64,000 nucleotides of DNA from Neoechinorhynchus agilis (Eukaryota; Animalia; Acanthocephala). Positions 3,350-61,290 of this stretch are shown here, piece after piece. Position 1 is the first letter of the stretch; each line of letters begins with the position of its first letter. The notes beneath the pieces were generated by a model, which was not told the origin of the DNA, searched no databases, and saw only the letters and a program-made list of their open reading frames with translations. The stretch covers positions 5,455,489 through 5,519,488 of the forward strand of contig CM121342.1 of NCBI GenBank assembly GCA_051530055.1, written 5' to 3'. The position numbers and the translations under genes were made by a program.

Positions 3350-4195
3350 TTAATAAATATTGTCCTTCATAAAAGTGTGATTAATGATAACAACTGAATG
3401 TTTATCGACTACTAATTCAAATATTTTGTTATTATTGTCCTTGAATTGATTGGATGTACTTATAGACGTTTTTCCGAGTTCCAACAATGAATTGTCCATT
3501 TCATATTTTAATCCTTTCGACGTTATCGTGGTTGGTCCACAAAACGGCACCACACCGCAGTAGATTCCGCAATTTCGGCAATCATTCGCTTCGATGATAT
3601 TGCGTACATTTGGTCCAACTGTAAACAATACATCAGAATCCGTTACGATGAACATTGGAAACGAAAATTGATTTGCGTGTTTTATCAAAGTGTGGATTAT
3701 GTTGATGGTATGATCAAACCTTCGACCCAAGATGCAGATTATATAGACGACATCGATGTCCGTATTGATTTCATTGCACTGATTAAACATCATCAAAGTC
3801 TTCTCTAGATCAGCAAAGTTCTGATCGGGCAACTCTACAAATGGAACTTTGAAAGCGTTTCGTGCCTCCATAGATAATGAATCCATATCTCCACAGACAA
3901 TAGTCGGTGATATAGGAACAATGGATCCCTGTTTATTAGTGCCATGGACGGCCTTAAGTAACATATTGGCTGCACCATCCACGCAAATCCGTAATTGGGA
4001 ACGATTCCAAAGATCACGACAATAATCGTTACGTCCATTGAATTGCACTGCATGATTCAACAATATCGATCCCATTTTCAGAGGTTTAACTTTGTTTACG
4101 AAACCTAAAAATGGTGAAATCTTCACTTGTTTCAATGCTGATGCCATTTGCATTATTGGTGTGCTCTTGGAAACTATAAATCGAATTCGGAACAA
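3350..4195 (-). CDS. TPK1: Thiamine pyrophosphokinase; intronless
   Basis: 281-aa ORF with ICVDGAAN, IVCGDMDS, DQNFADLEK, GRRFDH, SKGLKYEM and ISTSN motifs in the expected order. Confidence 0.9.
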   Translation of the reverse strand: MFRIRFIVSKSTPIMQMASALKQVKISPFLGFVNKVKPLKMGSILLNHAVQFNGRNDYCRDLWNRSQLRICVDGAANMLLKAVHGTNKQGSIVPISPTIVCGDMDSLSMEARNAFKVPFVELPDQNFADLEKTLMMFNQCNEINTDIDVVYIICILGRRFDHTINIIHTLIKHANQFSFPMFIVTDSDVLFTVGPNVRNIIEANDCRNCGIYCGVVPFCGPTTITSKGLKYEMDNSLLELGKTSISTSNQFKDNNNKIFELVVDKHSVVIINHTFMKDNIY

Positions 4196-4418: not shown

Positions 4419-5873
4419 ATTCCAAACACGGCCGAATGGTCTGGGACGGTGCTGGTCCGTGCTCAATGCCCCCCAAGACCGTAGACGGTTATAAGTTTGT
4501 ACATCCTCGTCCGGAGGAGATACTCATCAGTGAGTTCTCCCTTCAACACGGGGTATTTCGTCTCCTTTTGATTGTTCTCCCTTTGGCGACCGTGGATTCG
4601 AACCCTTTGACCCAACATCCAAACACGGCCAAATGGACACCCACAGTCCATCGCCGATTCATTGGTCTGGGAAGGTGCTGGTCCGTGCTCAATGCCCCCC
4701 AAGACCGTAGACGGTTAGAAGTTTGTACATCCTCGTCGGAGGAGATACTCATCAGTGAGTTCTCCCTTCAACACGGGGTATTTCGTCTCCTTTTGATTGT
4801 TCTCCCTTTGGCGACCGTGGATTCGAACCCTTTGACCCAACATCCAAACACGGCCAAATGGACACTCACAGTCCATCGCCGATTCATTGGTCTGGGACGG
4901 TGCTGGTCCGTGCTCAATGCCCCCCAAGACCGTAGACGGTTAGAAGTTTGTACATCCTCGTCCGGAGGAGATACTCATCAGTGAGTTCTCCCTTCAACAC
5001 GGGGTATTTCGTCTCCTTTTGATTGTTCTCCCTTTGGCGACCGTGGATTCGAACCCTTTGACCCAACATCCAAACACGGCCAAATGGACACTCACAGTCC
5101 ATCGCCGATTCATTGGTCTGGGACGGTGCTGGTCCGTGCTCAATGCCCCCCAAGACCGTAGACGGTTATAAGTTTGTACATCCTCGTCCGGAGGAGATAC
5201 TCATCAGTGAGTTCTCCCTTCAACACGGGGTATTTCGTCTCCTTTTGATTGTTCTCCCTTTGGCGACCGTGGATTCGAACCCTTTGACCCAACATCCAAA
5301 CACGGCCAAATGGACACTCACAGTCCATCGCCGATTCATTGGTCTGGGACGGTGCTGGTCCGTGCTCAATGCCCCCCAAGACCGTAGACGGTTATAAGTT
5401 TGTACATCCTCGTCCGGAGGAGATACTCATCAGTGAGTTCTCCCTTCAACACGGGGTATTTCGTCTCCTTTTGATTGTTCTCCCTTTGGCGACCGTGGAT
5501 TCGAACCCTTTGACCCAACATCCAAACACGGCCAAATGGACACTCACAGTCCATCGCCGATTCATTGGTCTGGGACGGTGCTGGTCCGTGCTCAATGCCC
5601 CCCAAGACCGTAGACGGTTATAAGTTTGTAAATCCTCGTCCGGAGGAGATACTCATCAGTGAGTTCTCCCTTCAACACGGGGTATTTCGTCTCCTTTTGA
5701 TTGTTCTCCCTTTGGCGACCGTGGATTCGAACCCTTTGACCCAACATCCAAACACGGCCAAATGGACACTCACAGTCCATCGCCGATTCATTGGTCTGGG
5801 ACGGTGCTGGTCCGTGCTCAATGCCCCCCAAGACCGTGTGGACTGCGGGTGCCCATTCGGCCGTGTTTGGAAT
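4419..5873. repeat. GC-rich 226-bp tandem array, 6 full units plus ends, bracketed by a 21-bp perfect inverted repeat
   Basis: Identical ORF fragments recur at 5113, 5339, 5565 (226-bp period). ATTCCAAACACGGCCGAATGG at 4419-4439 has its reverse complement at 5853-5873. Confidence 0.97.
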
Positions 5874-6418: not shown

Positions 6419-7610
6419 AAGAAATCAGCCGTGTAGAGGGTTTAATCAATTCAAAAATGGGCATATTTCTTAGTTAATTTTTCGCGAGCTGGTTACATTT
6501 TTTGCGCAGTCGGCTGATTTCTTGGACTCAACAAAACTCGCACCAAAAAGAGGGTGAGGGAAGCGTCCAGCGATGTCCTCCTCCTCGGACCGTATATTTC
6601 AGGGTTTTTAGGCGTGATTTTATGCTCTTCCCTCGCTCTTTTTGGTGTGAGTTTTGAACCTAAGAAATCAGCCGCGTCGAGAATGTAAAATGGGCACATT
6701 TCTTAGTTTATTTTTCGCGAGCTGGTTACATTTTTTGCGCAGTCGGCTGATTTCTTGGACTCAACAAAACTCACACCAAAAAGAGGGTGAGGGAAACGTC
6801 CAGCGACGTCCTCCTCCTCGGACCGTATATTTCACGGTTTTTAGGCGTGATTTTATGCTCTTCCCTCGCTCTTTTTAGTGTGAGTTTTGAACCTAAGAAA
6901 TCAGCCGTGTAGAGGGTGTAATCAATTCAAAAATGGGCATATTTCTTAGTTAATTTTTCGCGAGCTGGTTACATTTTTTGCGCAGTCGGCTGATTTCTTG
7001 GACTCAACAAAACTCACACCAAAAAGAGGGCGAGGGAAGCGTCCAGCGACGTCCTCCTCCTCGAACCGTATATTTCAGGGTTTTTAGGCGTGATTTTATG
7101 CTCTTCCCTCGCTCTTTTTAGTGTGAGTTTTGAACCTAAGAAATCAGCCGCGTAGAGGGTGTAATCAATTCAAAAATGGGCATATTTCTTAGTTAATTTT
7201 TCGCGAGCTGGTTACATTTTTTGCGCAGTCGGCTGATTTCTTGGACTCAACAAAACTCACACCAAAAAGAGGGCGAGGGAAGCGTCCAGCGACGTCCTCC
7301 TCCTCGGACCGTATATTTCAGGGTTTTTAGGCGTGATTTTATGCTCTTCCCTCGCTCTTTTTAGCGTGAGTTTTGAACCTAAGAAATCAGCCGCGTAGAG
7401 AATCTAAAATGGGCATATTTCTTAGTTTATGTTTCGCGAGCTGGTTACATTTTTTGCGCGGTGGTTCAAAACTCACACCAAAAAGAGGGTGAGGGAAGCG
7501 TCCAGCGACGTCCTCCTTCTCGGACCGTATATTTCAGGGTTTTTAGGCGTGATTTTATGCGATTCCCTCGCCCTTTTTAGTCTGAGTTTTGAACCCAAGA
7601 AATCAGCCGC
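6419..7610. repeat. Tandem array of 5 units (243/233/243/243/216 bp), each containing a fold-back with about 50-bp inverted arms
   Basis: AAGAAATCAGCCG recurs at 6419, 6662, 6895, 7138, 7381, 7597. The arms CGGCTGATTTCTT..CAAAACTCACACCAAAAAGAGGGCGAGGGAAG and CTTCCCTCGCTCTTTTT.GTGTGAGTTTTG..AAGAAATCAGCCG are complementary. Confidence 0.95.
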
Positions 7611-8102
7611 TAGAGAGTGTAATGAGTTCTGCACTTAAAAATAATCTAAAAATGTACTTGATAAGATGAATGTAAGAGACATTAGCACATTACTTTAATA
7701 AAAAGATAACAGAGATTCCATTATTTAGAACATTTTATTCTTCGCTGGAGGTCGCATGCCCTAACTGCTCCATCTTGGGACTCCTTATTGAATAAGCCAT
7801 AACATTCTTTCCTTGTAGTAACTAAAAAGCAAGTAATTATGTTAACGAACTACATTTTGAGCACAAAATCTACCAGGAACTAATTCACTTAGATCTAAAT
7901 AGAAAACAAACTCAATCTTAAACAAATAGAGGATCATTGAAAGAGTTTGGAGGCTTATCTTTGTTACCGAATTGAACGACCTGGAAAAAAGGCAATGTTT
8001 TATCCGCAAAAATACTCGCAGATTATCTTCAATAAACGTCTCGGTATTTTCCAAACAACGCCAATTTCTATTCAAATTACATAACATTCAGAATTATTGC
8101 TC

Positions 8103-10204: not shown

Positions 10205-12149
10205 TCTAACGATTATCCCTTCAATAAAGTAACTCGAGCCCTTTTTAGTGTCATTTTTTTAGGAATAAATCCCTTTCAGATTGCTAAATCGTACTTTGGA
10301 GTTTCGATTTTTCTACTTTTTAACGTTCATAACTTCACCAAAGTCACTCGAGCACCTTTTAAGTGTCATTTTTTAGGAATAAATCCCTTTCAAATTGCTA
10401 AATCGTACTTTGGAGTTTCGATTTTTCTACTTTTTAACGTTCATAACTTCACCAAAGTCACTCGAGCACCTTTTAAGTGTCATTTTTTTAGGAATAAATC
10501 CCTTTCAGATTGCTAAATCGTACTTTGGAGTTTCGATTTTTCTACTTTTTAACGTTCATAACTTCACCAAAGTCACTCGAGCACCTTTTAAGTGTAATTT
10601 TTTAGGAATAAATCCCTTTCAAATTGCTAAATCGTACTTTGGAGTTTCGATTTTTCTACTTTTTAACGTTCATAACTTCACCAAAGTCACTCGAGCCCTT
10701 TTTAGTGTCTTTTTTCGAGTTAATCCTAGTCAAAATGCTAAATCGTACTTTGGAGTTTCGATTTTTCTACTTTTTAACGTTCATAACTTCAATAAAGTCA
10801 CTCGAGCACCTTTTAAGTGTAATTTTTTAGGAATAAATCCCTTTCAAATTGCTAAATCGTACTTTGGAGTTTCGATTTTTCTACTTTTTAACGTTCATAA
10901 CTTCAATAAAGTCACTCGAGCACCTTTTAAGTGTCTTTTTTTCCGAATAAATCCCTTTCAAATTGCTAAATCGTACTTTGGAGTTTCGATTTTTTGAACA
11001 TTTTCCAATGTTTTGCACATTGAACAAATTTTTTTAACGTTCATTCCTTCACCAAAGTCACTGGAGCACCTTTTAAGTGTCTTTTTTCGAGTTAATCCTA
11101 GTCAAAATGCTAAATCGTACTTGGGACTTTTGAATAAATCCCTTTCAAATTGCCAAATCGTACTTTGGAGTTTCGATTTTTCTACTTTTTAACGTTCATT
11201 CCTTCACCAAAGTCACTCGAGCCCTTTTTAGTGTAATTTTTTAGGAATAAATCCCTTTCAAATTGCTAAATCGTACTTTGGAGTTTCGATTTTTCTACTT
11301 TTTAACGTTCATAACTTTACCAAAGTCACCCGAGCCCTTTTTAGTGTCTTTTTTCGAGTTAATCCTAGTCAAAATGCTAAATCGTACTTTGGAGTTTCGA
11401 TTTTTCTACTTTTTAACGTTCATAACTTCAATAAAGTCACTCGAGCACCTTTTAGTGTAATTTTTTAGGAATAAATCCCTTTCAAATTGCTAAATCGTAC
11501 TTTGGAGTTTCGATTTTTCTACTTTTTAACGTTCATAACTTCACCAAAGTCACTCCTTTTAGTGTCTTTTTTGATAATCCTCAATGCTAAATCGTACTTT
11601 GGAGTTTCGATTTTTCTACTTTTTAACGTTCATAACTTCAATAAAGTCACTCGAGCACCTTTTAAGTGTAATTTTTTAGGAATAAATCCCTTTCAAATTG
11701 CTAAATCGTACTTTGGAGTTTCGATTTTTCTACTTTTTAACGTTCATAACTTCAATAAAGTCACTCGAGCACCTTTTAAGTGTCTTTTTTCCGAATAAAT
11801 CCCTTTCAAATTGCTAAATCGTACTTTGGAGTTTCGATTGAACATTTTCCAATGTTTTGCACATTGAACAAATTTTTTTAACGTTCATTCCTTCACCAAA
11901 GTCACTGGAGCACCTTTTAAGTGTCTTTTTTCGAGTTAATCCTAGTCAAAATGCTAAATCGTACTTGGGACTTTTGAATAAATCCCTTTCAAATTGCCAA
12001 ATCGTACTTTGGAGTTTCGATTTTTCTACTTTTTAACGTTCATTCCTTCACCAAAGTCACTGGAGCACCTTTTAAGTGTCTTTTTTCGAGTTAATCCTAA
12101 TCAAAATGCTAAATCGTACTTGGGACTTTTGAATAGATCCCTTTCAAAT
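10205..12149. repeat. About 114-bp AT-rich satellite array (about 17 units) with several unit variants
   Basis: TGCTAAATCGTACTT recurs every 111-115 bp (10281, 10395, 10510, 10624, 10735, 10849, 10963 ...). Confidence 0.97.
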
Positions 12150-12728: not shown

Positions 12729-13308
12729 GAGTGCCGCTGAGGATTTACGGATTCGGGGACCATAGACAAAACTCCATTAGAAACGGTGCCTCGAGTGCCG
12801 CTGAGGATTTACGGATTCGGGGGCCATAGACAAAAGTCCATTAGAAACGGTGCTTCGAGTGCCGCTGAGGATTTACGGATTCGGGGGCCATAGACAAAAG
12901 TCCATTAGAAACGGTGCTTCGAGTGCCGCTGAGGATTTACGGATTCGGGGGGACCATAGACAAAAGTCCATTAGAAACGGTGCTTCGAGTGCCGCTGAGG
13001 ATTTACGGATTCGGGGACCATAGACAAAACTCCATTAGAAACGGTGCTTCGAGTGCCGCTGAGGATTTACGGATTCGGGGACCATAGACAAAAGTCCATT
13101 AGAAACGGTGCTTCGAGTGCCGCTGAGGATTTACGGATTCGGGGACCATAGACAAAAGTCCATTAGAAACGGTGCTTCGAGTGCCGTTGAGGATTTACGG
13201 ATTCGGGGGGGCCATAGACAAAAGTCCATTAGAAACGGTGCTTCGAGTGCCGCTGAGGATTTACGGATTCGGGGGGGGGCCATATACAAAAGTCCATTAG
13301 AAACGGTG
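12729..13308. repeat. 64-bp minisatellite, 9 units, with a variable G-tract
   Basis: GAGTGCCG(C/T)TGAGG starts at 12729, 12793, 12857, 12921, 12987, 13051, 13115, 13179, 13245. Confidence 0.98.
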
Positions 13309-17181: not shown

Positions 17182-18191
17182 GACCATTGAATCTTTAAAC
17201 AACTTTAGAGCTGTTGGAGGATTCAGAAAACCGATAAAATTTCAATCCAACGAATTAGGAAGTGGTCCAGAGTTCAGTTGTAACGAACAACTCAAAGTGG
17301 ATCTCTAGATGGTTACAGACCCTGAATTTGATTACTGCCGTCTATTATACGAACGTTAAGCGAATGGATCTCCATGCCGATTCGAAAACTTTTTGATATT
17401 GTGAATCTAAGAAATGACCACTAACGATCAGGTAACGCCCTATTTATCCCCTCCTTTTTGAATCTCTACAACTTTTCAAGAAAATAAGACAGCATCGTTA
17501 TGTGCGACTTTCATTGAGCCGGAATTGTGCGATAAGATGAAGGAATGATATTCCCTTTATCTTTTGAAAAATTAAAGCTCCGAACCAACGTGTCTCGTCC
17601 ATTAACTATTGGCCGGTAATTGAAAATGCGACTTCCCCTTTTTGTTGTTTCGGAAAATTCTAAATCATAAAAAATGGGCAACAATCTTGAACACTTTAAA
17701 TAAACACAACGATAACGCTTAGCAAATTAAATGACGAATTCTTGACCATAATGAAAAAGAGACTTTAAATAGAGACACCAAGTTGCAAAAATTCGCATTC
17801 AAAGTATTTCGGGATGTCCATTTGAAAAAGAGATTTTTTATCGAAAATTCAAAATTAAGACGCGTATATGAAATAAAGATTTATTCCAAATTACTTGGGA
17901 GGAAGAGGCACTGAATCGAAATAATTTAGAAGCAGAATGGAACCTACTTTTAAAAAAATTTCCCTGTTTTGAAAAATATTTTTGAAAATAAAATAAGTAA
18001 TTTAGTTCCGCAACATATAAAATTTCGTTCCCTGGAAAATATTACTTAATTTCGTTAATGAGTACAAATGTTTCGTAATTCATACTTTTGTTTTACGGTA
18101 CCGATTCAAGGAGCAGATAATTAGTGTTAATTAAACACGTGATGGCGATTGATTTATCTCACTGACCCCCCCTCAACACAACGGAACATTG

Positions 18192-19118
18192 ATGAGATCG
18201 TCTACAAAACGCAATTCCTATCTTCTTCTTCTAAAAATGAACAGATATCAAAAGTCAGCGAACAACTCCAGCATTGCAGAAAGCAAAGATTGCGACTTCA
18301 TTCGACCACGAAGATTGAACGACAAACGACGTTTTAGCGACCTAGGGGAAAACAAGCGATTTTCGAGAACAATCAACGATGTAGATCTTTTGCGACCAAA
18401 ACCTTCAAATCGCAATCTTCGATTTTGTGATCTAAACGCAAACCTTCCGGATAAGACTCAATTTTCCGGCAAAAGTCGTGTCTATGTGTCCAGTGTAGAT
18501 TCTTTGCGACACTTTCATATTTGGCTCATGCGCGATTTCGATAACAATTGGAAATCAATCAACGAACTCAGGGATTACTTCTCAACCAAAACCAACAGGA
18601 AGATCGTCTTTCAGAAAAATTTACGGCTAAACTCTCTTTACGTAGTCGAATTTCAAAGGGTGATTTACAGAGCATTACTTGAGGATCCATTTGTCAGCCA
18701 AGACAAAGTTCAGGTTTCCCTTGTGGATTTTGGACAACGCGTTCAAGTCAAAGTGACCGATATTTTCTTCTGCCCACGACGATTCGAAAAACTTCCCTAC
18801 ATGGCTTATCCGTGCGCATTGGATCGTGACCAAATTCCTGATCGTTGCGAAGGACGATGTCTCAATTCTGTACTTGATTCAAAATTCTTTGAAGTCCGAA
18901 TGCTTTACGTCGACATTAAATCTTGGATCCACATTGTAGTCGACTTATGGAAAGTTCTTAATGATAGAAACGATAGTCGAGTGCCTATAAGGCATTTACT
19001 TTTATCAGCTTTAAGAGACGATCGACGCATAAAACAGAGAAAAGTCTCCAAAAACCAAAACGAGGATTACGATCGCCCAATATTTGGCCGGAAACGAAAA
19101 TATTTGCGCAAAACCTAA
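18192..19118 (+). CDS. Tudor-domain protein, short paralog (one extended Tudor domain, 308 aa)
   Basis: VSSVDSLRHFHIW, VIYRALL, VQVSLVDFGQRVQV and FEKLPYMAYPCAL motifs. Near-identical to the 5' and 3' parts of 21246-23003. Confidence 0.8.
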   Translation: MRSSTKRNSYLLLLKMNRYQKSANNSSIAESKDCDFIRPRRLNDKRRFSDLGENKRFSRTINDVDLLRPKPSNRNLRFCDLNANLPDKTQFSGKSRVYVSSVDSLRHFHIWLMRDFDNNWKSINELRDYFSTKTNRKIVFQKNLRLNSLYVVEFQRVIYRALLEDPFVSQDKVQVSLVDFGQRVQVKVTDIFFCPRRFEKLPYMAYPCALDRDQIPDRCEGRCLNSVLDSKFFEVRMLYVDIKSWIHIVVDLWKVLNDRNDSRVPIRHLLLSALRDDRRIKQRKVSKNQNEDYDRPIFGRKRKYLRKT

Positions 19119-20125: not shown

Positions 20126-21245
20126 TTGGGACCAACAGAAAACATACAACTTGTGGTCTGGGTGGTACCAGTAGGAATCAGAAATTCTGGTGATGGCTCG
20201 AGAAGGGAGCCGAACAAAGGTCGAAAACAATCTCGTTACTTGGATTTGGAAATGGCTGAACGCATTTAAACATAAAAATAGCAATTTTCGCGCATTAGGC
20301 AAAAAATTCTCTGAAAAGCTTATTTATCTGTCAAACGAAGAATATGCCGAAATTCTTGGTGTTTTCGTGAATCACGAGGACTTTGAACTTTTCGTATATT
20401 TGTTTTAATTTAAAAGCTTCATTTCACCAAGAAATCGATTCTTAAGGGCGAAACGTTCAAAATTCACTCGCAAAAACGATGAATTATGAGCTCTGGTAGA
20501 TATTCTTGGATTAACGTTTCAATGTGCCTCATATGGAGTTCGAAAGGGATTTTGTTTCTATATTCCTCAAGTTCTTTGAGACAAAGAATGCATTCGTGAT
20601 GGTGTCACAGTCCAGAAAATGATTTCCTTTATTTTTCGATGATTGAATGAAAAATAATGTTCCTGACGATGTTTTTCAAATTTAGAATGTTATTCGATAG
20701 CTTGGCGTATTTGACACGATCAAAGATTCGTGAATCAATAAAAAAAATGGGAATTTGCGCTTTTTTGACTCTAAAAGTGTCTATTTTGTTCTTATTAATA
20801 ACAAAATGGCATCGAAACCGACAATCACCAATGCTTCCTTAGTGAATTCAAAAAAAAAGGTAATCATTTGAAAAATCGCTATTGACTGTCTACATTCCCT
20901 CCGAAGTCGTAAAGGTCTTGAAAATGAAGAAGATGTTAATGAGTCATCTAGGATTTCTCATGGAATTTCATTTTGCAAAAAAAGCAGAATGTAATTTCAG
21001 TTCAACACCGAATTTATAAAACGACCCAAAGCTTCTCTAAAACGAGTTCATATCAAATTACTGAATGCTCAATTAACACCGCAACATATAAAATTTCGTT
21101 CCCTGGAAAATATTACTTAATTTCGTTACTTAATTCATACTTTTGTTTTACGGTACCGATTCAAGGAGCAGATAATTAGTGTTAATTAAACACGTGATGG
21201 CGATTGATTTATCTCACTGACCCCCCTCAACACAACGGAACATTG

Positions 21246-23003
21246 ATGAGATCGTCTACAAAACGCAATTCCTATCTTCTTCTTCTAAAAATGAACAGAA
21301 ATAAAAAGTCAGCGAACAACTCCAGCATTGCAGAAAGCAAAGATTGCGACTTCATTCGACCACGAAGATTGAACGACAAACGACGTTTTAGCGACTTAGG
21401 GGAAAACGTTCCTCAGCGGTCTGAATTCAATAAAGACATTTTGGTATTGGTCGTTAGTACAGTCGATAATGACGAATTTTTCGTATGGAAGATGAACGAT
21501 TTTTCACAAAATACGAAGTTTCATCGTCGTTTCAACTCACATTTCCAGAATGAAAGGTGTCTTTTTTCTCTTCGAAGGACTAACATAAAAGATTCGTTCA
21601 TTTATGCCGTCAAGGTTTCAAACGTATTCTACCGAGCAAAGTTGGAAACCTCCGTAAGAGGCCAAGGACCAATCGGTATGCTTCTAGTAGATTTTGGCAT
21701 AACTGTCGATATAATGGAGGATTGCGTGTTCAATTGTCCAAGGGAATTCAGAGACAATGACCAAATGGCTTTTCGATGCAAATTCGCTGATATGGAAGTT
21801 AATGGCGATGAGTACCGATGTGCATCCAAAACACTCACTGCAATGACTCGCGATTTAGTTTTTCGGGCAAAATTTTTATTTGTAGAAGTTTTATTGAAAA
21901 TCGCCACCGTTGCTGAATTATGGAAAGTTCCGGGTCCGGTTGATGTCTGTCCGGACAATGCAAATGAATTTCGCATGAATGACTTCACTGAATCGGTTCG
22001 AGATTTACTAGTACGATACACAAAAAATGAGATTCCAAACCCTTATTATTCACGAATGGAAACAAAAATCGACGATTATAAAATGGACTTATTGGTAAAA
22101 AAATGCGATCAATCATCAGAAACGATAAGTGAGCAATCCACGAGTTCGTCAATAGGAAACACCGAAATAAAGAAACTGAAAAGTCGACACTCAAACGAGT
22201 CAACAGCGCCAATCACCAGTAAAGAATGGAAATGGGAAAAACAATTTTCTAGAACAATCAACGATGTAGATCTTTTGCGACCAAAACCTTCAAATCGCAA
22301 TCTTCGATTTTGTGATCTAAACGCAAACCTTCCGGATAAGACTCAATTTTCCGGCAAAAGTCGTGTCTATGTGTCCAGTGTAGATTCTTTGCGACACTTT
22401 CATATTTGGCTCATGCGCGATTTCGATAACAATTGGAAATCAATCAACGAACTCAGGGATTACTTCTCAACCAAAACCAACAGGAAGATCGTCTTTCAGA
22501 AAAATTTACGGCTAAACGCTCTTTACGTAGTCGAATTTCAAAGGGTGATTTACAGAGCATTACTTGAGGATCCATTTGTCAGCCAAGACAAAGTTCAGGT
22601 TTCCCTTGTGGATTTTGGACAACGCGTTCAAGTCAAAGTGACCGATATTTTCTTCTGCCCACGACGATTCGAAAAACTTCCCTACATGGCTTATCCGTGC
22701 GCATTGGATCGTGACCAAATTCCTGATCGTTGCGAAGGACGATGTCTCAATTCTGTACTTGATTCAAAATTCTTTGAAGTCCGAATGCTTTACGTCGACA
22801 TTAAATCTTGGATCCACATTGTAGTCGACTTATGGAAAGTTCTTAATGATAGAAACGATAGTCGAGTGCCTATAAGGCATTTACTTTTATCAGCTTTAAG
22901 AGACGATCGACGCATAAAACAGAGAAAAGTCTCCAAAAACCAAAACGAGGATTACGATCGCCCAATATTTGGCCGGAAACGAAAATATTTGCGCAAAACC
23001 TAA
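21246..23003 (+). CDS. Tudor-domain protein, long paralog (two extended Tudor domains, 585 aa); intronless
   Basis: Two repeats of the pattern FYRA/IYRA...LVDFG...F.CP..F....MA..C, typical of TDRD-type extended Tudor domains. Confidence 0.88.
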   Translation: MRSSTKRNSYLLLLKMNRNKKSANNSSIAESKDCDFIRPRRLNDKRRFSDLGENVPQRSEFNKDILVLVVSTVDNDEFFVWKMNDFSQNTKFHRRFNSHFQNERCLFSLRRTNIKDSFIYAVKVSNVFYRAKLETSVRGQGPIGMLLVDFGITVDIMEDCVFNCPREFRDNDQMAFRCKFADMEVNGDEYRCASKTLTAMTRDLVFRAKFLFVEVLLKIATVAELWKVPGPVDVCPDNANEFRMNDFTESVRDLLVRYTKNEIPNPYYSRMETKIDDYKMDLLVKKCDQSSETISEQSTSSSIGNTEIKKLKSRHSNESTAPITSKEWKWEKQFSRTINDVDLLRPKPSNRNLRFCDLNANLPDKTQFSGKSRVYVSSVDSLRHFHIWLMRDFDNNWKSINELRDYFSTKTNRKIVFQKNLRLNALYVVEFQRVIYRALLEDPFVSQDKVQVSLVDFGQRVQVKVTDIFFCPRRFEKLPYMAYPCALDRDQIPDRCEGRCLNSVLDSKFFEVRMLYVDIKSWIHIVVDLWKVLNDRNDSRVPIRHLLLSALRDDRRIKQRKVSKNQNEDYDRPIFGRKRKYLRKT

Positions 23004-26671: not shown

Positions 26672-26887
26672 TTTGTGATCGTCTAAGGTGGGCCGGGTGG
26701 AACGTTGAACCAATCGATTCTTCCGTGTACAAAGTTCGTTTCAAAATGGACTCTCGGGGTTTTAAATTCAATTATTTCAATGGACTCTCTTTAAAAAACA
26801 ACCAGCTTGCAAAAAAACAGGAACCAATCCTGAGTGTGTTTTTCATTCTAAACAAGATCAAAGATGGAGGGCCGAAATATTGAATTT

Positions 26888-29400
26888 GGTTCTCCAGAAC
26901 AACCAACGAACTATGAATCATCTTTTCAATATTTAGATCCCGGTGAAAAATTGAATTTTGAATAAATAATCAATTGTGGTTCTCCAAAACAACCAGCGAA
27001 CTATGAATCATCTTTTCAATATTTCCATCCCGGTGAAAAATTGAATTTTGAATAAATAATCAATTGTGGTTCTCCAAAACAACCAATAAACTATGAATCA
27101 TCTTTTCAATATTTCCATCCCGGTGAAAAATTGAATTTTGAATAAATAATCAATTGTGGTTCTCCAAAACAACCAACGAACTATGAATCATCTTTTCAAT
27201 ATTTAGATCCCGGTGAAAAATTGAATTTTGAATAAATAATCAATTGTGGTTCTCCAAAACAACCAACAAACTATGAATCATCTTTTCAATATTTAGATCC
27301 GTGAAAAATTGAATTTTGAATAAATAATCAATTGTGGTTCTCCAACACAACTATGAATCATCTTTTCAATATTTCCATCCGTGAAAAATTGAATTTTGAA
27401 TAAATAATCAATTGTGGTTCTCCAAAACAACAAACTATGAATCATCTTTTCAATATTTCCATCCCGGTGAAAAATTGAATTTGAATAAATAATCAATTGT
27501 GGTTCTCCAAAACAACAACTATGAATCATCTTTTCAATATTTATCCCGGTGAAAATTGAATTTTGAATAAATAATCAATTGTGGTTCTCCAAAACAAACT
27601 ATGAATCATCTTTTCAATATTTCCATCCCGGTGAAAAATTGAATTTTGAATAAATAATCAATTGTGGTTCTCCAAAACAACCAGCAAACTATGAATCATC
27701 TTTTCAATATTTCCATCCCGGTGAAAATTTGAATTTTGAATAAATAATCAATTGTGGTTCTCAACAAAACAAACTATGATCATCTTTTCAATATTTATCG
27801 TGAAAATTGAATTTTGAATAAATAATCAATTGTGGTTCTCCAAAACAACCAACAACTATGAATCATCTTTTCAATATTTCATCCCGGCGAAAAATTGAAT
27901 TTTGAATAAATAATCAATTGTGGTTCTCCAAAACAACCAATAAACTATGAATCATCTTTTCAATATTTCCATCCCGGTGAAAAATTGAATTTTGAATAAA
28001 TAATCAATTGTGGTTCTCCAAAACAACCAGCGAACTATGAATCATCTTTTCAATATTTCCACCCGGTGAAAAATTGAATTTTGAATAAATAATCAATTGT
28101 AGTTCTCCAAAACAACCAATAAACTATGAATCATCTTTTCAATATTTAGATCCCGGTGAAAAATTGAATTTTGAATAAATAATCAATTGTGGTTCTCCAA
28201 AACAACCAACAAACTATGAATCATCTTTTCAATATTTAGATCCCGGTGAAAAATTGAATTTTGAATAAATAATCAATTGTAGTTCTCCAAAAAAAGCAAC
28301 AAACTATGAATAATCTTTTCAATATTTCCATCCCGGTGAAATATTGAATTTTGAATAAATAATCAATTGTGGTTCTCCAAAACAACCAATAAACTATGAA
28401 TCATCTTTTCAATATTTAGATCCCGGTGAAAAATTGAATTTAATCAATAATCAATTGTAGTTCTCCAAAACAACCAGCGAACTATGAATAATCTTTTCAA
28501 TATTTCCATCCCGGTGAAATATTGAATTTTGAATAAATAATCAATTGTGGTTCTCCAAAACAACCAACAAACTATGAATCATCTTTTCAATATTTCCATC
28601 CCGGCGAAAATTTGAATTTTGAATAAATAATCAATTGTGGTTCTCAAAAACAACCAGCGAACTATGAATCATCTTTTCAATATTTCCATCCCGGTGAAAA
28701 TTTGAATTTTGAATAAATAATCAGTTGTGGTTCTCCAAAACAACCAGCGAACTATGAATCATCTTTTCAATATTTCCATCCCGGTGAAAATTTGAATTTT
28801 GAATAAATAATCAATTGTGGTTCTCCAAAACAACCAAATTTAAACAACCAGGAACTATGAATCATCTTTTCAATATTTCCATCCCGGTGAAAATTTGAAT
28901 TTTGAATAAATAATCAATTGTGGTTCTCCAAAACAACCAATAAACTATGAATCATCTTTTCAATATTTCCATCCCGGTGAAATATTGAATTTTGTATAAA
29001 TAATCAATTGTGGTTCTCCAAAACAACCACCACAAAAAACATCGAAGGCTAATGTTGTAGATTTAATAATTTCAATGGACTTTTTAGAAAACAACCACCT
29101 TGAAAAAATAATTCGTAGTTTGTTGGTTGTTTTGAAGAAATACAATTGATTATTTATTAAATTCAAACTTTTACTGGATATAACTTGATAATCCCTGAGT
29201 GTTTTTTTTGATTCTAAACAAGATCCAAGATGGAGGGCCGAAATATTGAATTTAATAAATAATCAATTGTGGTTCTCCAAAACAACCAGCGAACTATGAA
29301 TCATCTTTTCAATATTTCCATCCCGGTGAAAAATTTAATTTAATAAATAATCAGTTGTAGTTCTTCAAAAACAACCAACAAACAACCACCACAAGAAACA
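26888..29400. repeat. 90-bp AT-rich satellite: about 24-unit main array (26888-29029) plus a short second block (29254-29400)
   Basis: CTATGAATCATCTTTTCAATATTT recurs at 27001, 27091, 27181 and onward. Confidence 0.98.
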
Positions 29401-37220: not shown

Positions 37221-37960
37221 GCGTGAGATCGTCAGATTCCTAAATCGGATATGCAATACAGAGGAATGCTGATCTTTTCCTATTTCCAGTTCGCACCCAA
37301 TATTCTTTGCAAGACGAGCCAACATTTCTAACTCGCTCAGCTTTTTCCTTCTAAAATCGCTTTAATATCATCATTCAATACATTCAAAACGTTTCGTTGA
37401 AAAAGGAAAGACTGTAAGATTGTTGTCTTCGTTGAAGCTTCCACATCTTCTTGGTCTAAAGAATGAGAGCGATTCCATATACGAACATCAGCATTCCTCT
37501 GTATTGCATATCCGATTTAGGAATCTGACGATCTCACGCTCTTTTGTCTTCTACTTGAATCTTCCAACTCGCTCAGCTTTTTCCTTCTAAAATCGCTTTA
37601 ATATCATCATTCAATGCATTCAAAACGTTTCGTTGAAAAAGGAAAGACTGTAAGATTGTTGTCTTCGTTGAAGCTTCCACATCTTCTTGGTCTAAAGAAT
37701 GAGAGCGATTCCATATACGAACATCAGCATTCCTCTGTATTGCATATCCGATTTAGGAATCTGACGATCTCACGCTCTTTTGTCTTCTACTTGAATCTTC
37801 CAACTCGCTCAGCTTTTTCCTTCTAAAATCGCTTTAATATCATCATTCAATGCATTCAAAACGTTTCGTTGAAAAAGGAAAGACTGTAAGATTGTTGTCT
37901 TCGTTGAAGCTTCCACATCTTCTTGGTCTAAAGAATGAGAGCGATTCCATATACGAACAT
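37221..37960. repeat. 236-bp tandem repeat (about 2.7 units) with a 53-bp inverted copy of part of the unit at its left
   Basis: ACTCGCTCAG recurs at 37331, 37567, 37803. 37221-37273 is the exact reverse complement of 37487-37539. Confidence 0.93.
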
Positions 37961-43504: not shown

Positions 43505-44530
43505 ATGCGGCGGCCACCGTTTGTGTTCGATGCAAAGAAGGCAAGAATGTTCAATGCAGCATTGGTGGATCAACGAGCAGAAGGAAATTCAAGATTGTGT
43601 TCCGAATTACGAAGCATTGTTCCCGAGGGCATTCTCAGCGCTCTACATTCGAACGGCGCAGATCACATTGAGATGTCCAGCATTGTATTGGCAGGAGATG
43701 ATCAAAAATCGATAGGACAAAATCAGAATTATGTAAAAGGCGGTCTAATATACTTGCCAACTACAAATAGTCAATTTGAGCGGTTTTTAAAGCGCACCCG
43801 TGGTCCGGTTGTGATTGATTTTTACGCTAGATGGTTGAGTGAGGCTATAAAAAAGGAGAAAGGTATAGTGAAGGTTGTGCGAGTGAATGTAAGTAAGCTT
43901 CCTGAGATTGCAAGACAATACGATGTGTCAGTGACTCCGACAGCAGTTGGTGTTGGATGTGATGGATTGGAAGTGAGTCGTTTGACCGGAGCTACGGATG
44001 ATCAGAACATCCGGCATTTTGTAAAGGAGATAGTTGAATCTTGTAAGAAAGCGAAAGGGAGACGGAGTGCGAGTGCAGATCGGTATGAAAGCGACGATTT
44101 TGCGTTTGGACATGATCGTGAATTGAAAAGATCACCAATGAGGCAGCGACCATACCATCGATGTGAGTTAATAGAGCGCGAGGGCATCGTTTTAACATGT
44201 TCATATTTAGACGAGAAGACTCATCGGCGTTCAAGGAGTGAAGTAAGATTTCCCCAAAACGAAAAAGATCAAACTCACAAGCAGTTTTTCTTTACGAACG
44301 AAGCCATTTCGAGCAAGCCGCTGACCATGATTCCTGGAATAGGTCAAGTGTACGCGGCTCGAATGGAAGCACATGGAATCCACTCGGCTAAACAATTAGT
44401 CGGTATTTACATGCAAGAGCGGAACATGGTGGAGTTTCAGAACTGGTTAAAGGATTCGTTCCACATGAATGAGCGTTGGGCTCGAATCGCGACTGAAGCG
44501 ATCGAGACCGTCGTTCGACACATGGTCTGA
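43505..44530 (+). CDS. Single ORF: thioredoxin-like fold lacking CxxC plus a C-terminal barrier-to-autointegration factor (BAF)-like domain
   Basis: PVVIDFYARW-LSEAIKKEKG.VKVVRVNV..LPEIARQYDVSVTPT is thioredoxin-like. THKQFF.TNEAISSKPLTMIPGIGQVYAARMEAHG...FQNWLKD is BAF-like. No stop in 341 codons. Confidence 0.8.
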   Translation: MRRPPFVFDAKKARMFNAALVDQRAEGNSRLCSELRSIVPEGILSALHSNGADHIEMSSIVLAGDDQKSIGQNQNYVKGGLIYLPTTNSQFERFLKRTRGPVVIDFYARWLSEAIKKEKGIVKVVRVNVSKLPEIARQYDVSVTPTAVGVGCDGLEVSRLTGATDDQNIRHFVKEIVESCKKAKGRRSASADRYESDDFAFGHDRELKRSPMRQRPYHRCELIEREGIVLTCSYLDEKTHRRSRSEVRFPQNEKDQTHKQFFFTNEAISSKPLTMIPGIGQVYAARMEAHGIHSAKQLVGIYMQERNMVEFQNWLKDSFHMNERWARIATEAIETVVRHMV

Positions 44531-44590
44531 GCCAAAAATACAGACCAATCCTTTTGTTCATAAAGAATCTGAAGTTTACACGAGCATCTA

Positions 44591-47500
44591 TTACACCCCA
44601 TGCACACCTCCATCGTTTGGACCATCTTTTTCACAGATTCTGAATTGTCCATTTTGATCGAATTGTTCAAATACGTAGATCTGAACATGATTGGGGAGGC
44701 GTAGGACAACAACAACAAAAAATATATTATAACCTGGTCCGTTTCATAGAGGGTTAGTAATGAACTAGGAAAGCAAATAACCACATAGTCATTGAATATA
44801 TTGCTCTGGTGTGAAACGTCGTTGATAGACCGGAAAGATGAACCGTCCACCTTTCCTGATTTGAGCAAGACTTTTGATCGGTAAATTCCGAGACACAAAA
44901 TGTCGGCTTTAAGCATTGCATTCTGGAACAACTCGCCAAATGAGATTGTTTTCGCCTTCACGAGTATTTAAATCGCATAGAGTGCTTTTTTTTAACTTAC
45001 GTCCATGCTAAGAAATCTTCTGAGAATCGATAGCTTTACCAAATTAAGCCTTGATCTTGGCTGAGACTCAATCGGATGGTTCCCTCGGTGAAAACTAGAG
45101 TTTGGGTCGAACATTCCCAAGGATCGCGTTCCTTCACCTCCATTTATCAGGCACCTGATCAATCTTAGAGCCTTGTCATTGTAGTATGCCTAAAACGTCT
45201 TAGTAAATCTACCAATAAAAATTTCAAGTTGTTTTCAAACTAAAGGCAAAAAAACTCAAAAGACCTATTAAGCATAAAATTTTCGAGGCCGAGTTTTTTA
45301 AACGATTCGGTTATTTTTGAAAGACTTACAGTGCTGATAATATAGTCGATGATCGTATCTACAAACGCAGATCCGCTTGCGAATGAAGAAGATTTGTACA
45401 GCTCGAACACCGAAGACTCATCGGATCCCTCGTCGTCGTCTTCTTGAACATATTGAACATTTGTTTCGATTTCTAAAATTAGTTGCTTCATTAATATATA
45501 TTTCTTCATTCGTTAGCTCACAGTGATTTGAGGCGACAAAAATGGTAAAACGAATTTGTGTGATAAAATGCGAAAGATGAGCCACTAAAACGCCCAGAAT
45601 ATGCGGAACTACGATGGTCAAGATGTGCTAAAGCTCATTGATGGATTTCAAAAGGTACCGCGTTACATAAGATTGGAATTTTCAAACCTCGTATGGGGTA
45701 AAAACCGATAAAAAATAATCTTGATTTCTGACAGTAATAATTCCGTGAGTCGATTCACTACTAAACATTTACCGAGATCAGTGATTGTTCGTGGCACATT
45801 AGAGCTCCATTTGAACTCTTCGTCTGGATTCAACTGGTTGTTATTAGCTCTGTAGGAGTACCCATCGTAGCTTGTAGCAAAACTCCGGATGCAGAGAGTG
45901 CATAAGATTGCCGACTTATCAATCAAGTAAGTATCTTCGCTGTCTCTGTCAATAAGAGACATTACCACTGATGCATGACTTTCTGACATGTTCAAAGCTG
46001 TCATAACGTTCATGCTATTGGGAGATCCCTGCGTTAATCATTGTTTAAAACATAGTTGATTCGTCTTCTTTTTAATCAAACTTACATCGTACACGTAAAT
46101 ATGCGGAAAATTCGATATTGACTGCCATTCCTTTCGAAAATAATCAATGCTTCCAACCAAAATTATCGGATGGAGCTCGTCGTAAGATATGTTCGAAGCT
46201 CTCAATGGCTGTACAAAGCATCTTAGTCCAATCAAAGGAGATTCTTCGTTTGCGAATAGAAAAAGAATAACGTGATTTTTGAGTGGATCACGATTTCCAC
46301 CGTCGATCCGTCGGAATTTCTCATGGTTCTGCGATTTGTGAAAGGCAATTCGTTAATGAGCTTTGACATACCAATGTGGCTTCTTCGATTTTCCTTTCGT
46401 GAGTTGAATGACAACTTGAAGTATTCCTGCGTGGCAGTCTAGAAACAAACAAAAAAAATTGAAAAATTCGACGAATCTTTCAACAAAAACACAAATTTAC
46501 CCTGGTTTCCGAGCTGGAGATGTTGCACCACCAAAATCATTTACTTTCCCACTAGTTTTCTTATCGCTCAATTGCCTTTTCGCAAAACTGTCTTTGACTT
46601 TCAAATCCAGAGAAAAGAACTTACGTATATAATCCACGACTTTTTTGTTGAGAACGATGAAGGTGAACCGGTGATAATGTTTTATAGCTGAAGGATGATT
46701 TACCTCCGGGAGCTGAATCAGAGATACGTTTTTAAAATTTTTTTACATATTGGTACAATGGATTTTAGAAAAACAACAGATATCGCTCTATAAAACATTC
46801 GGCCAATTGATATCACTTAAAGATTTTTTTTGAAAAAGAAACTCGATTTCTAACTCGTGAAACCGGAATTTTCACCATTTCAAAGACCTCTTATAAAACA
46901 ATTGAGAATCTGTATTCCGATTCTCAATTTATATTAGAGGCAAGTGTACAAATCTTTATGTTTCTTAACTATGAAAGCGGATTTTCGGAATAAAGCTAAC
47001 AAGCATCTGCTCTCTTGGGTTTTTGGGAAGTTTGGCGAGCGACTCACGTTGAATATGGAGACATGGCCTGCGTCCTGGAATAATCAAAGCTTCTCCTCGT
47101 GCGTGACACTGTCCACAAAAAAACTTTATCCGTTTCGCCTCTTCAGAGGAGCTCGCCAATACAAATCCACGAGTAGACATCATTTTAATGGTAAATTGTG
47201 ATCCGGGATTTATCATAATTTCTTTTTCATTTGAAATTTCATCGTCTGACTCCACTGCGATCAGCAGGACGCCGAGTTTGAAGCAAATACTAAATAGATG
47301 CTTAAAATCGGTTTCAAAAATCGCAACTGACAGAGCAGCATCCGTGAATGATTTGTCTTCAAAATATGAACTAAAAGAGCAAGTGTAAATCTCCATGGAA
47401 GCCCCAGCACAGTACAGGTCTCTCCAAGATGGTTGGCCCTTCAGATCAAAATTTCAGTTACACTTTAGGTTCATCGACATTCTCACCGTGAATGAGTCGT

Positions 47501-59018: not shown

Positions 59019-61290
59019 AAGTCTTTTAAACTCATTGAAGACTCTTTTTAAGTGTTTAGAACGTTTGATTGTTCAGGTCTCTAAAAATTAAGACTTGTAA
59101 ACGCCGAATCCTGACTATGGCAAAGAACGAAAAACTCATGGTTTTTTTTTCAATTGACCGTACGCCAAACTCATTATAAATTCATTTAAGAATCTAGAGA
59201 AAACCTCAATCTTTTGTATCGGCCAAAAAAATGCGATCACGACATTTTCTAAATGTTTAGAACGTTTGATTGTTCAGGTCTCGAAAAATTAAGACTTGTA
59301 AACGCCGAATCCGGACTATGGCAAAGAACGAAAAACTCATGGCTTTTTTTCCAATGACCGTACGCCAAACTCAATGGAAATTCATTTAAGAATCTAGAGA
59401 AAACCTCAATTTTTTGTATCGGCCCACAAAAAATGCGATCACCACATTTTCTAAATTGTTTAGAACGTTTGATTGTTCAGGTCTCTAAAAATTAAGACTT
59501 GTAAACGCCGAATCCGAACTATGGCAAAGAACGAAAAACTCATGGCTTTTTTTCCAATGACCGTACGCCAAACTCAATAGAAATTCATTTAAGAATCTAG
59601 AGAAAACCTCAATCTTTTGTATCGGCCCAAAAAATGCGATCACCACATTTTCTAAATGTTTAGAACGTTTGATTGTTCAGGTCTCTAAAAATTAAGACTT
59701 GTAAACGCCGAATCCGAACTATGGCAAAGAACGAAAAACTCATGGTTTTTTTCCAATGACCGTACGCCAAACTCAATAGAAATTCATTTAAGAATCTAGA
59801 GAAAACCTCAATCTTTTGTATCGGCCAAAAAAATGCGATCACTACATTTTATAAAAGTCTTTTAAACTCATTGAAGACTCTTTTTAAGTGTTTAGAACGT
59901 TTGATTGTTCAGGTCTCTAAAAATTAAGACTTGTAAACGCCGAATCCGAACTATGGCAAAGAACGAAAAACTCATGGCTTTTTTTCCAATGACCGTACGC
60001 CAAACTCAATGGAAATTCATTTAAGAATCTAGAGAAAACCTCAATCTTTTGTATCGGCCCACAAAATGCGATCACTACATTTTCTAAATGTTTAGAACGT
60101 TTGATTGTTCAGGTCTCTAAAAATTAAGACTTGTAAACGCCGAATCCGAACTATGGCAAAGAACGAAAAACTCATGGTTTTTTTCCAATGACCGTACGCC
60201 AAACTCAATAGAAATTCATTTAAGAATCAGAAAACCTCAATCTTTTGTATCGGCCCAAAAAATGCGATCACTACATTTTATAAAAGTCTTTTAAACTCAT
60301 TGAAGACTCTTTTTAAGTGTTTAGAACGTTTGATTGTTCAGGTCTCGAAAAATTAAGACTTGTAAACGCCGAATCCGAACTATGGCAAAGAACGAAAAAC
60401 TCATGGCTTTTTTTCCAATGACCGTACGCCAAACTCAATAGAAATTCATTTAAGAATCTAGAGAAAACCTCAATCTTTTGTATCGGCCCAAAAAATGCGA
60501 TCACTACATTTTCTAAATGTTTAGAACGTTTGATTGTTCAGGTCTCTAAAAATTAAGACTTGTAAACGCCGAATCCGAACTATGGCAAAGAACGAAAAAC
60601 TCATGGGTTTTTTTCCAATGACCGTACGCCAAACTCAATAGAAATTCATTTAAGAATCTAGAGAAAACCTCAATCTTTTGTATCGGCCCAAAAAATGCGA
60701 TCACTACATTTTCTAAATGTTTAGAACGTTTGATTGTTCAGGTCTCGAAAAATTAAGACTTGTAAACGCCGAATCCGGACTATGGCAAAGAACGAAAAAC
60801 TCATGGTTTTTTTCCAATGACCGTACGCCAAACTCAATGGAAATTCATTTAAGAATCTAGAGAAAACCTCAATCTTTTGTATCGGCCAAAAAAATGCGAT
60901 CACTACATTTTATAAAAGTCTTTTAAACTCATTGAAGACTCTTTTTAAGTGTTTAGAACGTTTGATTGTTCAGGTCTCAAAAATTAAGACTTGTAAACGC
61001 CGAATCCGGACTATGGCAAAGAACGAAAAACTCATGGCTTTTTTTCCAATGACCGTACGCCAAACTCAATGGAAATTCATTTAAGAATCTAGTGAAAACC
61101 TCAATCTTTTGTATCGGCCCACAAAATGTGACTACCACATTTTCTAAATGTTTAGAACGTTTGATTGTTCAGGTCTCTAAAAATTAAGACTTGTAAACGC
61201 CGAATCCGAACTATGGCAAAGAACGAAAAACTCATGGCTTTTTTTCCAACGGCCGTACGCCAAACTCAATGGAAATTCATTTAAGAATCT
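59019..61290. repeat. About 200-bp satellite array, 11 units, some extended to about 230 bp
   Basis: GTTTAGAACGTTTGATTG recurs at 59054, 59255, 59458, 59658, 59890, 60090, 60319, 60519, 60719, 60951, 61150. Confidence 0.98.

Follow-up and report, generated by a model that had tools for sequence, protein, structure and literature searches.

Does an acanthocephalan encode a protein in which a BAF domain is joined to a thioredoxin (Trx) fold that lacks its active site, and, if so, what kind of molecule would this be? The locus that raises the question is a single open frame of 341 codons, read at 43505..44530 on the plus strand of the 64,000-nt stretch of DNA analyzed here (hereafter, the window), which derives from Neoechinorhynchus agilis chromosome CM121342.1 of assembly GCA_051530055.1. 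BAF is among the most conserved and architecturally invariant of animal chromatin proteins, normally a stand-alone 89-residue dimer that links DNA, LEM proteins, and lamins. We find that the Trx-BAF locus is a genuine protein-coding gene of N. agilis and belongs to a small acanthocephalan-specific family. Its novelty lies in the conserved Trx-BAF domain architecture, BAF paralogs themselves being known and the proteins being deposited just as "hypothetical".

Gene Model and Genomic Surroundings

The deposited counterpart of the frame is hypothetical protein ACOME3_005905 (P0001), a 325-aa protein from an annotation pipeline that used BRAKER and mRNA-seq reads (PMC12690905); the deposited locus sequence (L001) is identical to window positions 33505-54530. 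Removing nucleotides 44163-44210 from the frame yields exactly this protein, and this is the sole difference between the two. The removed segment (44163..44210, plus strand) is a 48-nt phase-1 GT-AG intron (GTGAGT...TTTAG) in the deposited BRAKER model, with a parallel in Pomphorhynchus laevis. It is in frame and stop-free, a coincidence with a chance of about 1 in 7, which explains why the initial annotation saw a single frame; that frame is open as claimed, but it runs through a candidate intron that is likely spliced. Coding exon 1, traced in both the frame and the deposited model, extends from the start codon to the splice donor (43505..44162, plus strand) and holds an N-terminal extension, the Trx-like domain, and the first part of a linker. 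The deposited coding exon 2 (44211..44530, plus strand) holds what remains of the linker together with the BAF domain, and includes the stop codon. An exact-protein look-up with the unspliced 341-aa product found a match in no other contig, and neither a BAF entry nor the locus tags were found in the supplementary data of the omics papers on N. agilis and P. laevis.

The linker (44060..44248, plus strand) is disordered, charged, and Arg/Ser-rich, as judged from AF2, composition, and alignments, with 17 K+R and 14 D+E by composition count and a pLDDT below 50 at aa 193-233 of the spliced protein. Its length, first put at about 65 aa, is indeed ~65-70 aa in the unspliced frame but only ~50-55 aa in the spliced model. 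Linker sequences are unalignable between species, and that of the window gene contains an internal methionine (MRQRPY). A phase-1 linker intron is found in both the window gene and its P. laevis ortholog, 13 versus 21 residues before a conserved FPQ motif, which supports the descent of both from one ancestral intron and, for the window gene, an intron that is real.

The window is an ordinary gene-dense, intron-poor region of an animal chromosome. Most of its genes are long unbroken ORFs, and for this reason we dropped the retrogene origin that the near-intronless look of the Trx-BAF gene might suggest. Two uninterrupted minus-strand ORFs, encoding an NDUFV2-type [2Fe-2S] thioredoxin-like ferredoxin (48-779) and thiamin pyrophosphokinase (3350-4195), exemplify the intron poverty of this genome. 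The neighbors include an aromatic amino-acid hydroxylase, a laminin-G gene, Slowpoke channel exons, a WD40 gene, an SNF2 helicase, Tudor-domain ORFs, and satellite arrays. A brute-force intron fit to the hydroxylase gene gave four equal solutions (one 106-nt intron, or two of 32-74 nt), from which we learn that introns here are short and nothing more. The Slowpoke (BK) channel gene, on the strand opposite to the Trx-BAF gene (44437-45509 and on to ~49800, minus strand), ends 60 nt past the Trx-BAF stop and appears to be split across four or more short gene models (Slowpoke_C, Slo-like_RCK, and others); ORF 44437-44961, on the minus strand, shares the final 94 nt of the Trx-BAF coding region. 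The Tudor-domain ORFs, with one and two copies of the domain by Pfam (18189-19118 and 21204-23003, plus strand), may belong to a single multi-Tudor gene or form a tandem pair. Seven long-period tandem arrays (4437-5837, 6419-7623, 10219-11839, 12729-13308, 26875-29029, 37326-37960, and 59045-61290) have units of 64-430 bp in up to 24 copies at 87-99% identity, and two ORFs within arrays (4436-4984 and 10395-10997), both without a Pfam match, are probably repeat artifacts. Rfam, at gathering thresholds, detected no RNA family across the whole window.

The Fusion in a Paralog and an Ortholog

Whether the two domains belong to one gene can be read most directly from a second copy. Paralog P0003 (ACOME3_004241), on N. 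agilis chromosome CM121341.1, is one unbroken 684-nt exon that encodes exactly a 227-aa two-domain protein, and since both domains lie in one exon, the fusion is independent of splice prediction. The search for orthologs proposed at the outset was also productive: P. laevis, which belongs to a different acanthocephalan class from N. agilis, encodes GJ496_001544 (P0002; 226 aa; contig WNNJ02000535.1) with both Pfam domains. Its Trx exon ends in a canonical donor (ACAG/GTAAGA) with a stop two codons beyond, and its BAF exon, 3.5 kb away and joined by a predicted phase-1 intron, starts at a canonical acceptor (TTTAG/AT), has a stop upstream, and lacks an in-frame ATG ahead of the domain; its translation thus requires splicing to an upstream exon. 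There is no methionine between the domains in P0002 or P0003, which removes, for the family, the scenario in which a separate BAF product starts at the internal ATG of MRQRPY.

Family members without a BAF domain also occur in P. laevis, where P0004 and P0043 are stand-alone Trx-like members. Of these BAF-less genes, the Trx-like, CGPC-deleted GJ496_001543 lies 4.6 kb downstream of the fusion in tandem (locus L003, 10001-13111), and GJ496_004767 and GJ496_002412 encode stand-alone CGPC-deleted Trx-like proteins of 115 and 132 aa. The latter two, on two contigs and of differing length, both match locus L004 (5950-6348) at 100% identity and may be haplotigs. A tblastn search across the loci of P0004 and P0043 found no BAF exon hidden behind either gene, and the string KFANQILNSK at the end of P0004, considered as BAF-like, had no Pfam support and was rejected. 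An alternative P. laevis model of 732 aa (L003 1-5426, WNNJ02000535.1), which adds an upstream Ion_trans channel gene to the Trx and BAF exons, is probably a prediction that merges too much. The N. agilis paralog P0003 also adjoins a channel gene, of PKD type and on the opposite strand, and sequence synteny with P. laevis was not detected there; when the P. laevis loci were compared by tblastx with the window and with the paralog locus, as a synteny comparison for orthology, only the Trx and BAF exons matched.

The BAF domain of the window protein is 58% identical to that of P0002 and 40% identical to that of the paralog (56.5% to the P. laevis BAF exon by tblastx), and the Trx-like domains of family members share 30-44% identity. 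Conserved domains on either side of an unalignable linker are the mark left by selection acting on a pair of folded domains with a spacer between them. In AF2 models of P0001 and P0002, both domains exceed a pLDDT of 90 on either side of a disordered linker, and the overall pTM values of 0.44 and 0.55 suggest two independently folded units with no fixed interdomain packing. We then asked how widely the architecture is distributed, using an exhaustive HMMER scan of 1.84 billion (1.84e9) representative proteins, in which the best 150 matches were examined for domain pairs. Trx and BAF occur together only in P0001, P0002, and P0003 among these 150; any other protein with both domains would be expected to rank close to the top. 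The Trx-BAF fusion is restricted to Acanthocephala among the proteins searched. A full-text literature search found neither a natural Trx-BAF fusion nor anything on rotifer BAFs, in keeping with the original statement that no such fusion was known.

Two rival explanations can be weighed against these data. Two adjacent genes, one Trx-like and one BAF, might have been wrongly merged, or a BAF-only product might start at the internal ATG; the 3.5-kb separation of the P. laevis exons, the stand-alone Trx-like genes P0004 and P0043, and the methionine in the window linker are what one would cite for this. We consider it very unlikely, given that both N. agilis copies are open across the junction, one of them without any intron, that the interdomain methionine is missing from P0002 and P0003 and the P. 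laevis BAF exon combines an upstream stop with the lack of an ATG, and that a stop-free in-frame spacer of 50-70 codons has a low probability of arising twice. The locus might otherwise be a decaying chimeric pseudogene, in which a crippled thioredoxin copy landed beside a BAF copy and serves no function. The catalytic motif is deleted, both domains have diverged far from their canonical relatives, and many conserved genes have been lost in N. agilis (PMC12256650), all of which would fit such decay. Yet the frames are intact in three genes of two species from different classes, the deletion junction is identical and the core fold residues (cis-Pro, FY, and RVNVSK.P) have been kept, P0001 and P0002 share 58% identity in their BAF domains beside a linker that cannot be aligned, and the AF2 folds are confident; decay is hence a highly improbable account of the Trx-BAF gene.

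A Thioredoxin Fold without Its Active Site

The Trx-like domain (aa 79-185; 43739..44059, plus strand) is of Trx2/bacterial-type derivation and was delineated by Pfam, AF2, Foldseek, and profile comparison. Pfam Thioredoxin (PF00085) matches aa 85-175 with 34.7 bits (cut-off 23.5), and AF2 predicts a β-α-β-α-β-α-β-β-α layout with a pLDDT above 90. Alignments with PDB thioredoxins place the deletion junction at W110/L111 (43832..43837, plus strand; W at 43832-43834 and L at 43835-43837). There, a 10-residue gap right after DFYARW takes out CGPC and ~6 further residues, the first half of helix α2, which in the AF2 model begins directly after strand β2 and is just nine residues long. The initial annotation had described a deletion of about 10 residues including CGPC with no intron signal at that point, and both parts of this description stand: the gap recurs in all alignments to solved thioredoxins, and the DNA is contiguous at the junction, so no hidden exon can restore CGPC, the only noted intron signal of the gene being that of the linker. 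With the entire CGPC loop deleted and CxxC absent throughout the protein, the domain is a thioredoxin-fold protein and, by the defining test, not a thioredoxin enzyme; the earlier label "redox-dead" is apt.

The deletion is a family trait. The FYxxW/helix junction of the window protein is found in five further acanthocephalan proteins and, together with an RVNVSKxP motif, is common to all Trx-like family members; the cis-proline loop is kept as well, with P145 (TPT) invariant in 5/5. The recurrence of the junction in five more proteins, and the significant scores of both domains, leave chance as no issue. In a survey of the 150 top-ranking representatives of the exhaustive scan, 115 were of the thioredoxin type; CxxC was missing from eight of the 115, in three of these by substitution of Cys in a full-length fold, and the 10-residue deletion was confined to acanthocephalan proteins. 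A five-domain profile searched against the PDB had human mitochondrial Trx2 as its best match (1uvz; E 7.7e-13), with the gap exactly over CGPCKILGPR, and Foldseek likewise placed 1uvz on top (TM 0.75-0.80). TXN2 is thus the nearest relative by profile and by fold among PDB entries, and in that comparison the Trx part is a Trx2-derived fold with its catalytic loop excised.

The Trx fold is preceded by a copy-specific N-terminal extension with a basic tip (aa 1-78; 43505..43738, plus strand), described here from alignments, AF2, and composition. Met57 of the window protein falls, in the alignment, where the P. laevis ortholog begins, and the basic extension of ~56-78 aa is confined to the window copy in alignments against P0002, P0003, and the stand-alone family members, all of which start a few residues ahead of the Trx fold. 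Its open frame has a ~3-8% chance of accidental openness, AF2 confidence is low across it, and M1, M15, and M57 are the candidate start codons. Residues 1-20 include five K/R and one acidic residue; residues 10-22 are predicted to be helical, an R-x-F↓N pattern is present, and acidic residues are frequent beyond residue 20. Of the early suggestion of mitochondrial targeting, the basic tip and Trx2 as the nearest relative survive, but the extension belongs to this copy only and is modeled with low confidence, and the targeting of the window protein is at best weakly suggested by its sequence.

Two rival readings of the protein can be judged from these features. If the Trx2-derived part had kept or regained a presequence, the protein could be imported, and its BAF domain could compact or bridge mitochondrial DNA, in which case the mitochondrial nucleoid would be the target of a DNA-bridging domain of the BAF type; BAF is not known to have been reported from mitochondria. 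The kinship with mitochondrial Trx2 and the make-up of residues 1-20 speak for import, which we regard as improbable in view of an extension that is missing from ortholog, paralog, and stand-alone members, the acidic residues past residue 20, the low AF2 confidence, and a start codon (M1, M15, or M57) that is only a prediction. It is extremely unlikely that the Trx-like domain is still redox- or chaperone-active via other cysteines, even though Cys153 and Cys180 lie within the domain or beside it and the cis-Pro loop is conserved: neither cysteine is conserved in P0002, P0004, or P0043, no CxxC exists anywhere in the proteins, and the loop that bears the nucleophile is physically missing.

The BAF Domain, a Proposed Mechanism, and Known Systems

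The C-terminal part of the protein (ORF aa 249-341; 44249..44527, plus strand) is a divergent BAF domain by Pfam, matches to PDB BAF structures, AF2, and tblastx. Pfam SAM_BAF (PF02961) matches aa 257-334 with 48.7 bits (cut-off 25), covering profile positions 4-82 of 88, and scores 36.7 bits in P0002 and 45.2 bits in P0003. The domain is ~30% identical to human BAF, aligns with human residues 5 to 81, and is modeled with a pLDDT above 90; it is the full BAF-like domain initially proposed, with the PGIG hairpin at aa 277-280 (44333-44344). We took residue roles from the structure of the lamin-BAF-emerin complex, in which Gly25 lies at the DNA interface, Gly47 is the center of the dimer interface, and Val11, Ala12, Pro14, Glu83, Ala87, and Phe88 form the lamin A/C-binding surface (PMC6212729). 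In the window domain, G25, I26, and G27 are invariant, K6, K18, and N70 are retained, and K33R and K72R remain basic. G47 and W62 are kept, Gly47 also in P0002, and the paralog P0003 has G47A and W62Y. All six lamin A/C contacts are replaced (V11T, A12N, P14A, E83T, A87H, and F88M). The basic residues K32, K41, and K54 are lost, and with only ~30% identity to human BAF, the affinity for DNA could be altered.

The closest BAF-only relatives are rotiferan. Bdelloid BAF paralogs are the best BAF-only matches to the acanthocephalan profile among the best 150, and they have A12N and the deletion of one residue at L58 in common with the window domain, which places the BAF moiety in a paralog lineage of Syndermata; relative to Acanthocephala, rotifers form either the sister group or a paraphyletic stem. 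Going by the residues retained and replaced, this lineage probably still dimerizes and binds DNA but presents a different partner surface. A search with a mixed BAF profile returned 529 matches, and the best 120, from vertebrates, molluscs, and the like, contain no acanthocephalan entry that could be a stand-alone canonical BAF of N. agilis or P. laevis; a source look-up of the short BAF matches among those listed found none from an acanthocephalan. The Trx-tethered proteins may be additional, specialized BAFs; alternatively, acanthocephalans may have lost canonical BAF, which would make these proteins their only BAFs.

We propose, as a fairly probable reading based on residue conservation and analogy, that the protein is an acanthocephalan DNA-bridging dimer of the BAF type in which each subunit tethers a Trx fold without redox activity, and this fold either binds proteins or has a steric effect on the N-terminal DNA-binding face. 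The BAF domains would dimerize through the conserved Gly47/Trp62 core, the GIG helix-hairpin-helix and basic residues would bind dsDNA without sequence specificity, and the dimer could then bridge or compact DNA in the manner of BAF, presumably in the nucleus. A flexible, charged, and probably phosphorylatable linker would tether the Trx2-derived fold to the BAF domain. Stripped of the whole CGPC loop and of half of helix α2, the Trx fold cannot serve as a disulfide reductase; by analogy, it would most likely be a protein-binding or steric module, and as an alternative to partner binding it may sterically modulate the nearby N-terminal DNA-binding face. Every lamin A/C contact residue is replaced, and the protein probably links DNA to a set of partners different from that of canonical BAF. 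In canonical BAF, the N-terminal region is where regulation by phosphorylation takes place.

The retained natural fusion demonstrates that BAF is a module open to new uses, here with its lamin surface rewritten and a dead Trx fold placed near its N-terminus, and it offers a clean case of a thioredoxin fold surviving the loss of its whole catalytic loop. The architecture may also serve as a lineage marker for Acanthocephala and may provide a handle on nuclear or chromatin biology in this phylum, whose members have giant nuclei and syncytial tissues and have undergone extreme gene loss. Its practical impact is modest at present.

Among known systems, BANF1/BAF-1 (PF02961) shares with the window domain the fold family, a full-length domain, the GIG helix-hairpin-helix, K6, K18, N70, Gly47, Trp62, and basic residues at 33 and 72. 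BANF1/BAF-1 is, however, a stand-alone protein of ~89 aa that is highly conserved across animals, whereas the window BAF is the C-terminal domain of a 325/341-aa protein, with its lamin A/C contacts replaced, its Cys-rich C-terminal helix changed, and one residue deleted at L58. BAF is not always a stand-alone single domain, as proteins with two or three tandem BAF domains exist in the representative library (P0006, P0008, P0009, P0010, P0011, P0013, P0015, and P0045). The bdelloid paralogs (Adineta steineri, Didymodactylos carnosus, and Rotaria sp.; P0007, P0033, P0060, and P0080) carry a C-terminal BAF behind a ~115-160-aa extension that has no thioredoxin fold (Pfam; hhalign probability 0.07%), and we rejected an older, Syndermata-wide fusion on these grounds. 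The rotifer extensions contain a Cys-Cys motif instead; the pair (e.g., SCCGG) is invariant in the low-complexity extensions of P0007, P0019, P0033, P0060, and P0080.

On the thioredoxin side, TXN2 (PDB 1uvz/1w4v) aligns with the window domain in β-sheet order, cis-Pro, the FY/W before the active site, and the C-terminal helix; in contrast to TXN2, the window Trx part is missing CGPCKILGPR, has no redox center, is fused to another domain, and has an uncertain presequence. Trx domains have been recruited into multidomain proteins before, as in the Trx-NDK protein TXNDC3/NME8, and BANF2/BAF-L is a tissue-restricted BAF paralog, but neither joins Trx with BAF, and BAF-L is stand-alone. Redox-inactive Trx folds are also known as structural modules, in spliceosomal Dim1/TXNL4A and in E. 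coli thioredoxin as the redox-independent processivity subunit of T7 DNA polymerase. These resemble the window fold in having a non-thiol role in protein/nucleic-acid machinery, a likeness that we read as functional analogy only. Dim1, which lost the motif by substitution, and the intact thioredoxin of the T7 polymerase both keep a full-length fold, whereas the acanthocephalan protein has had the loop and half a helix deleted and is tethered to a putative DNA binder.
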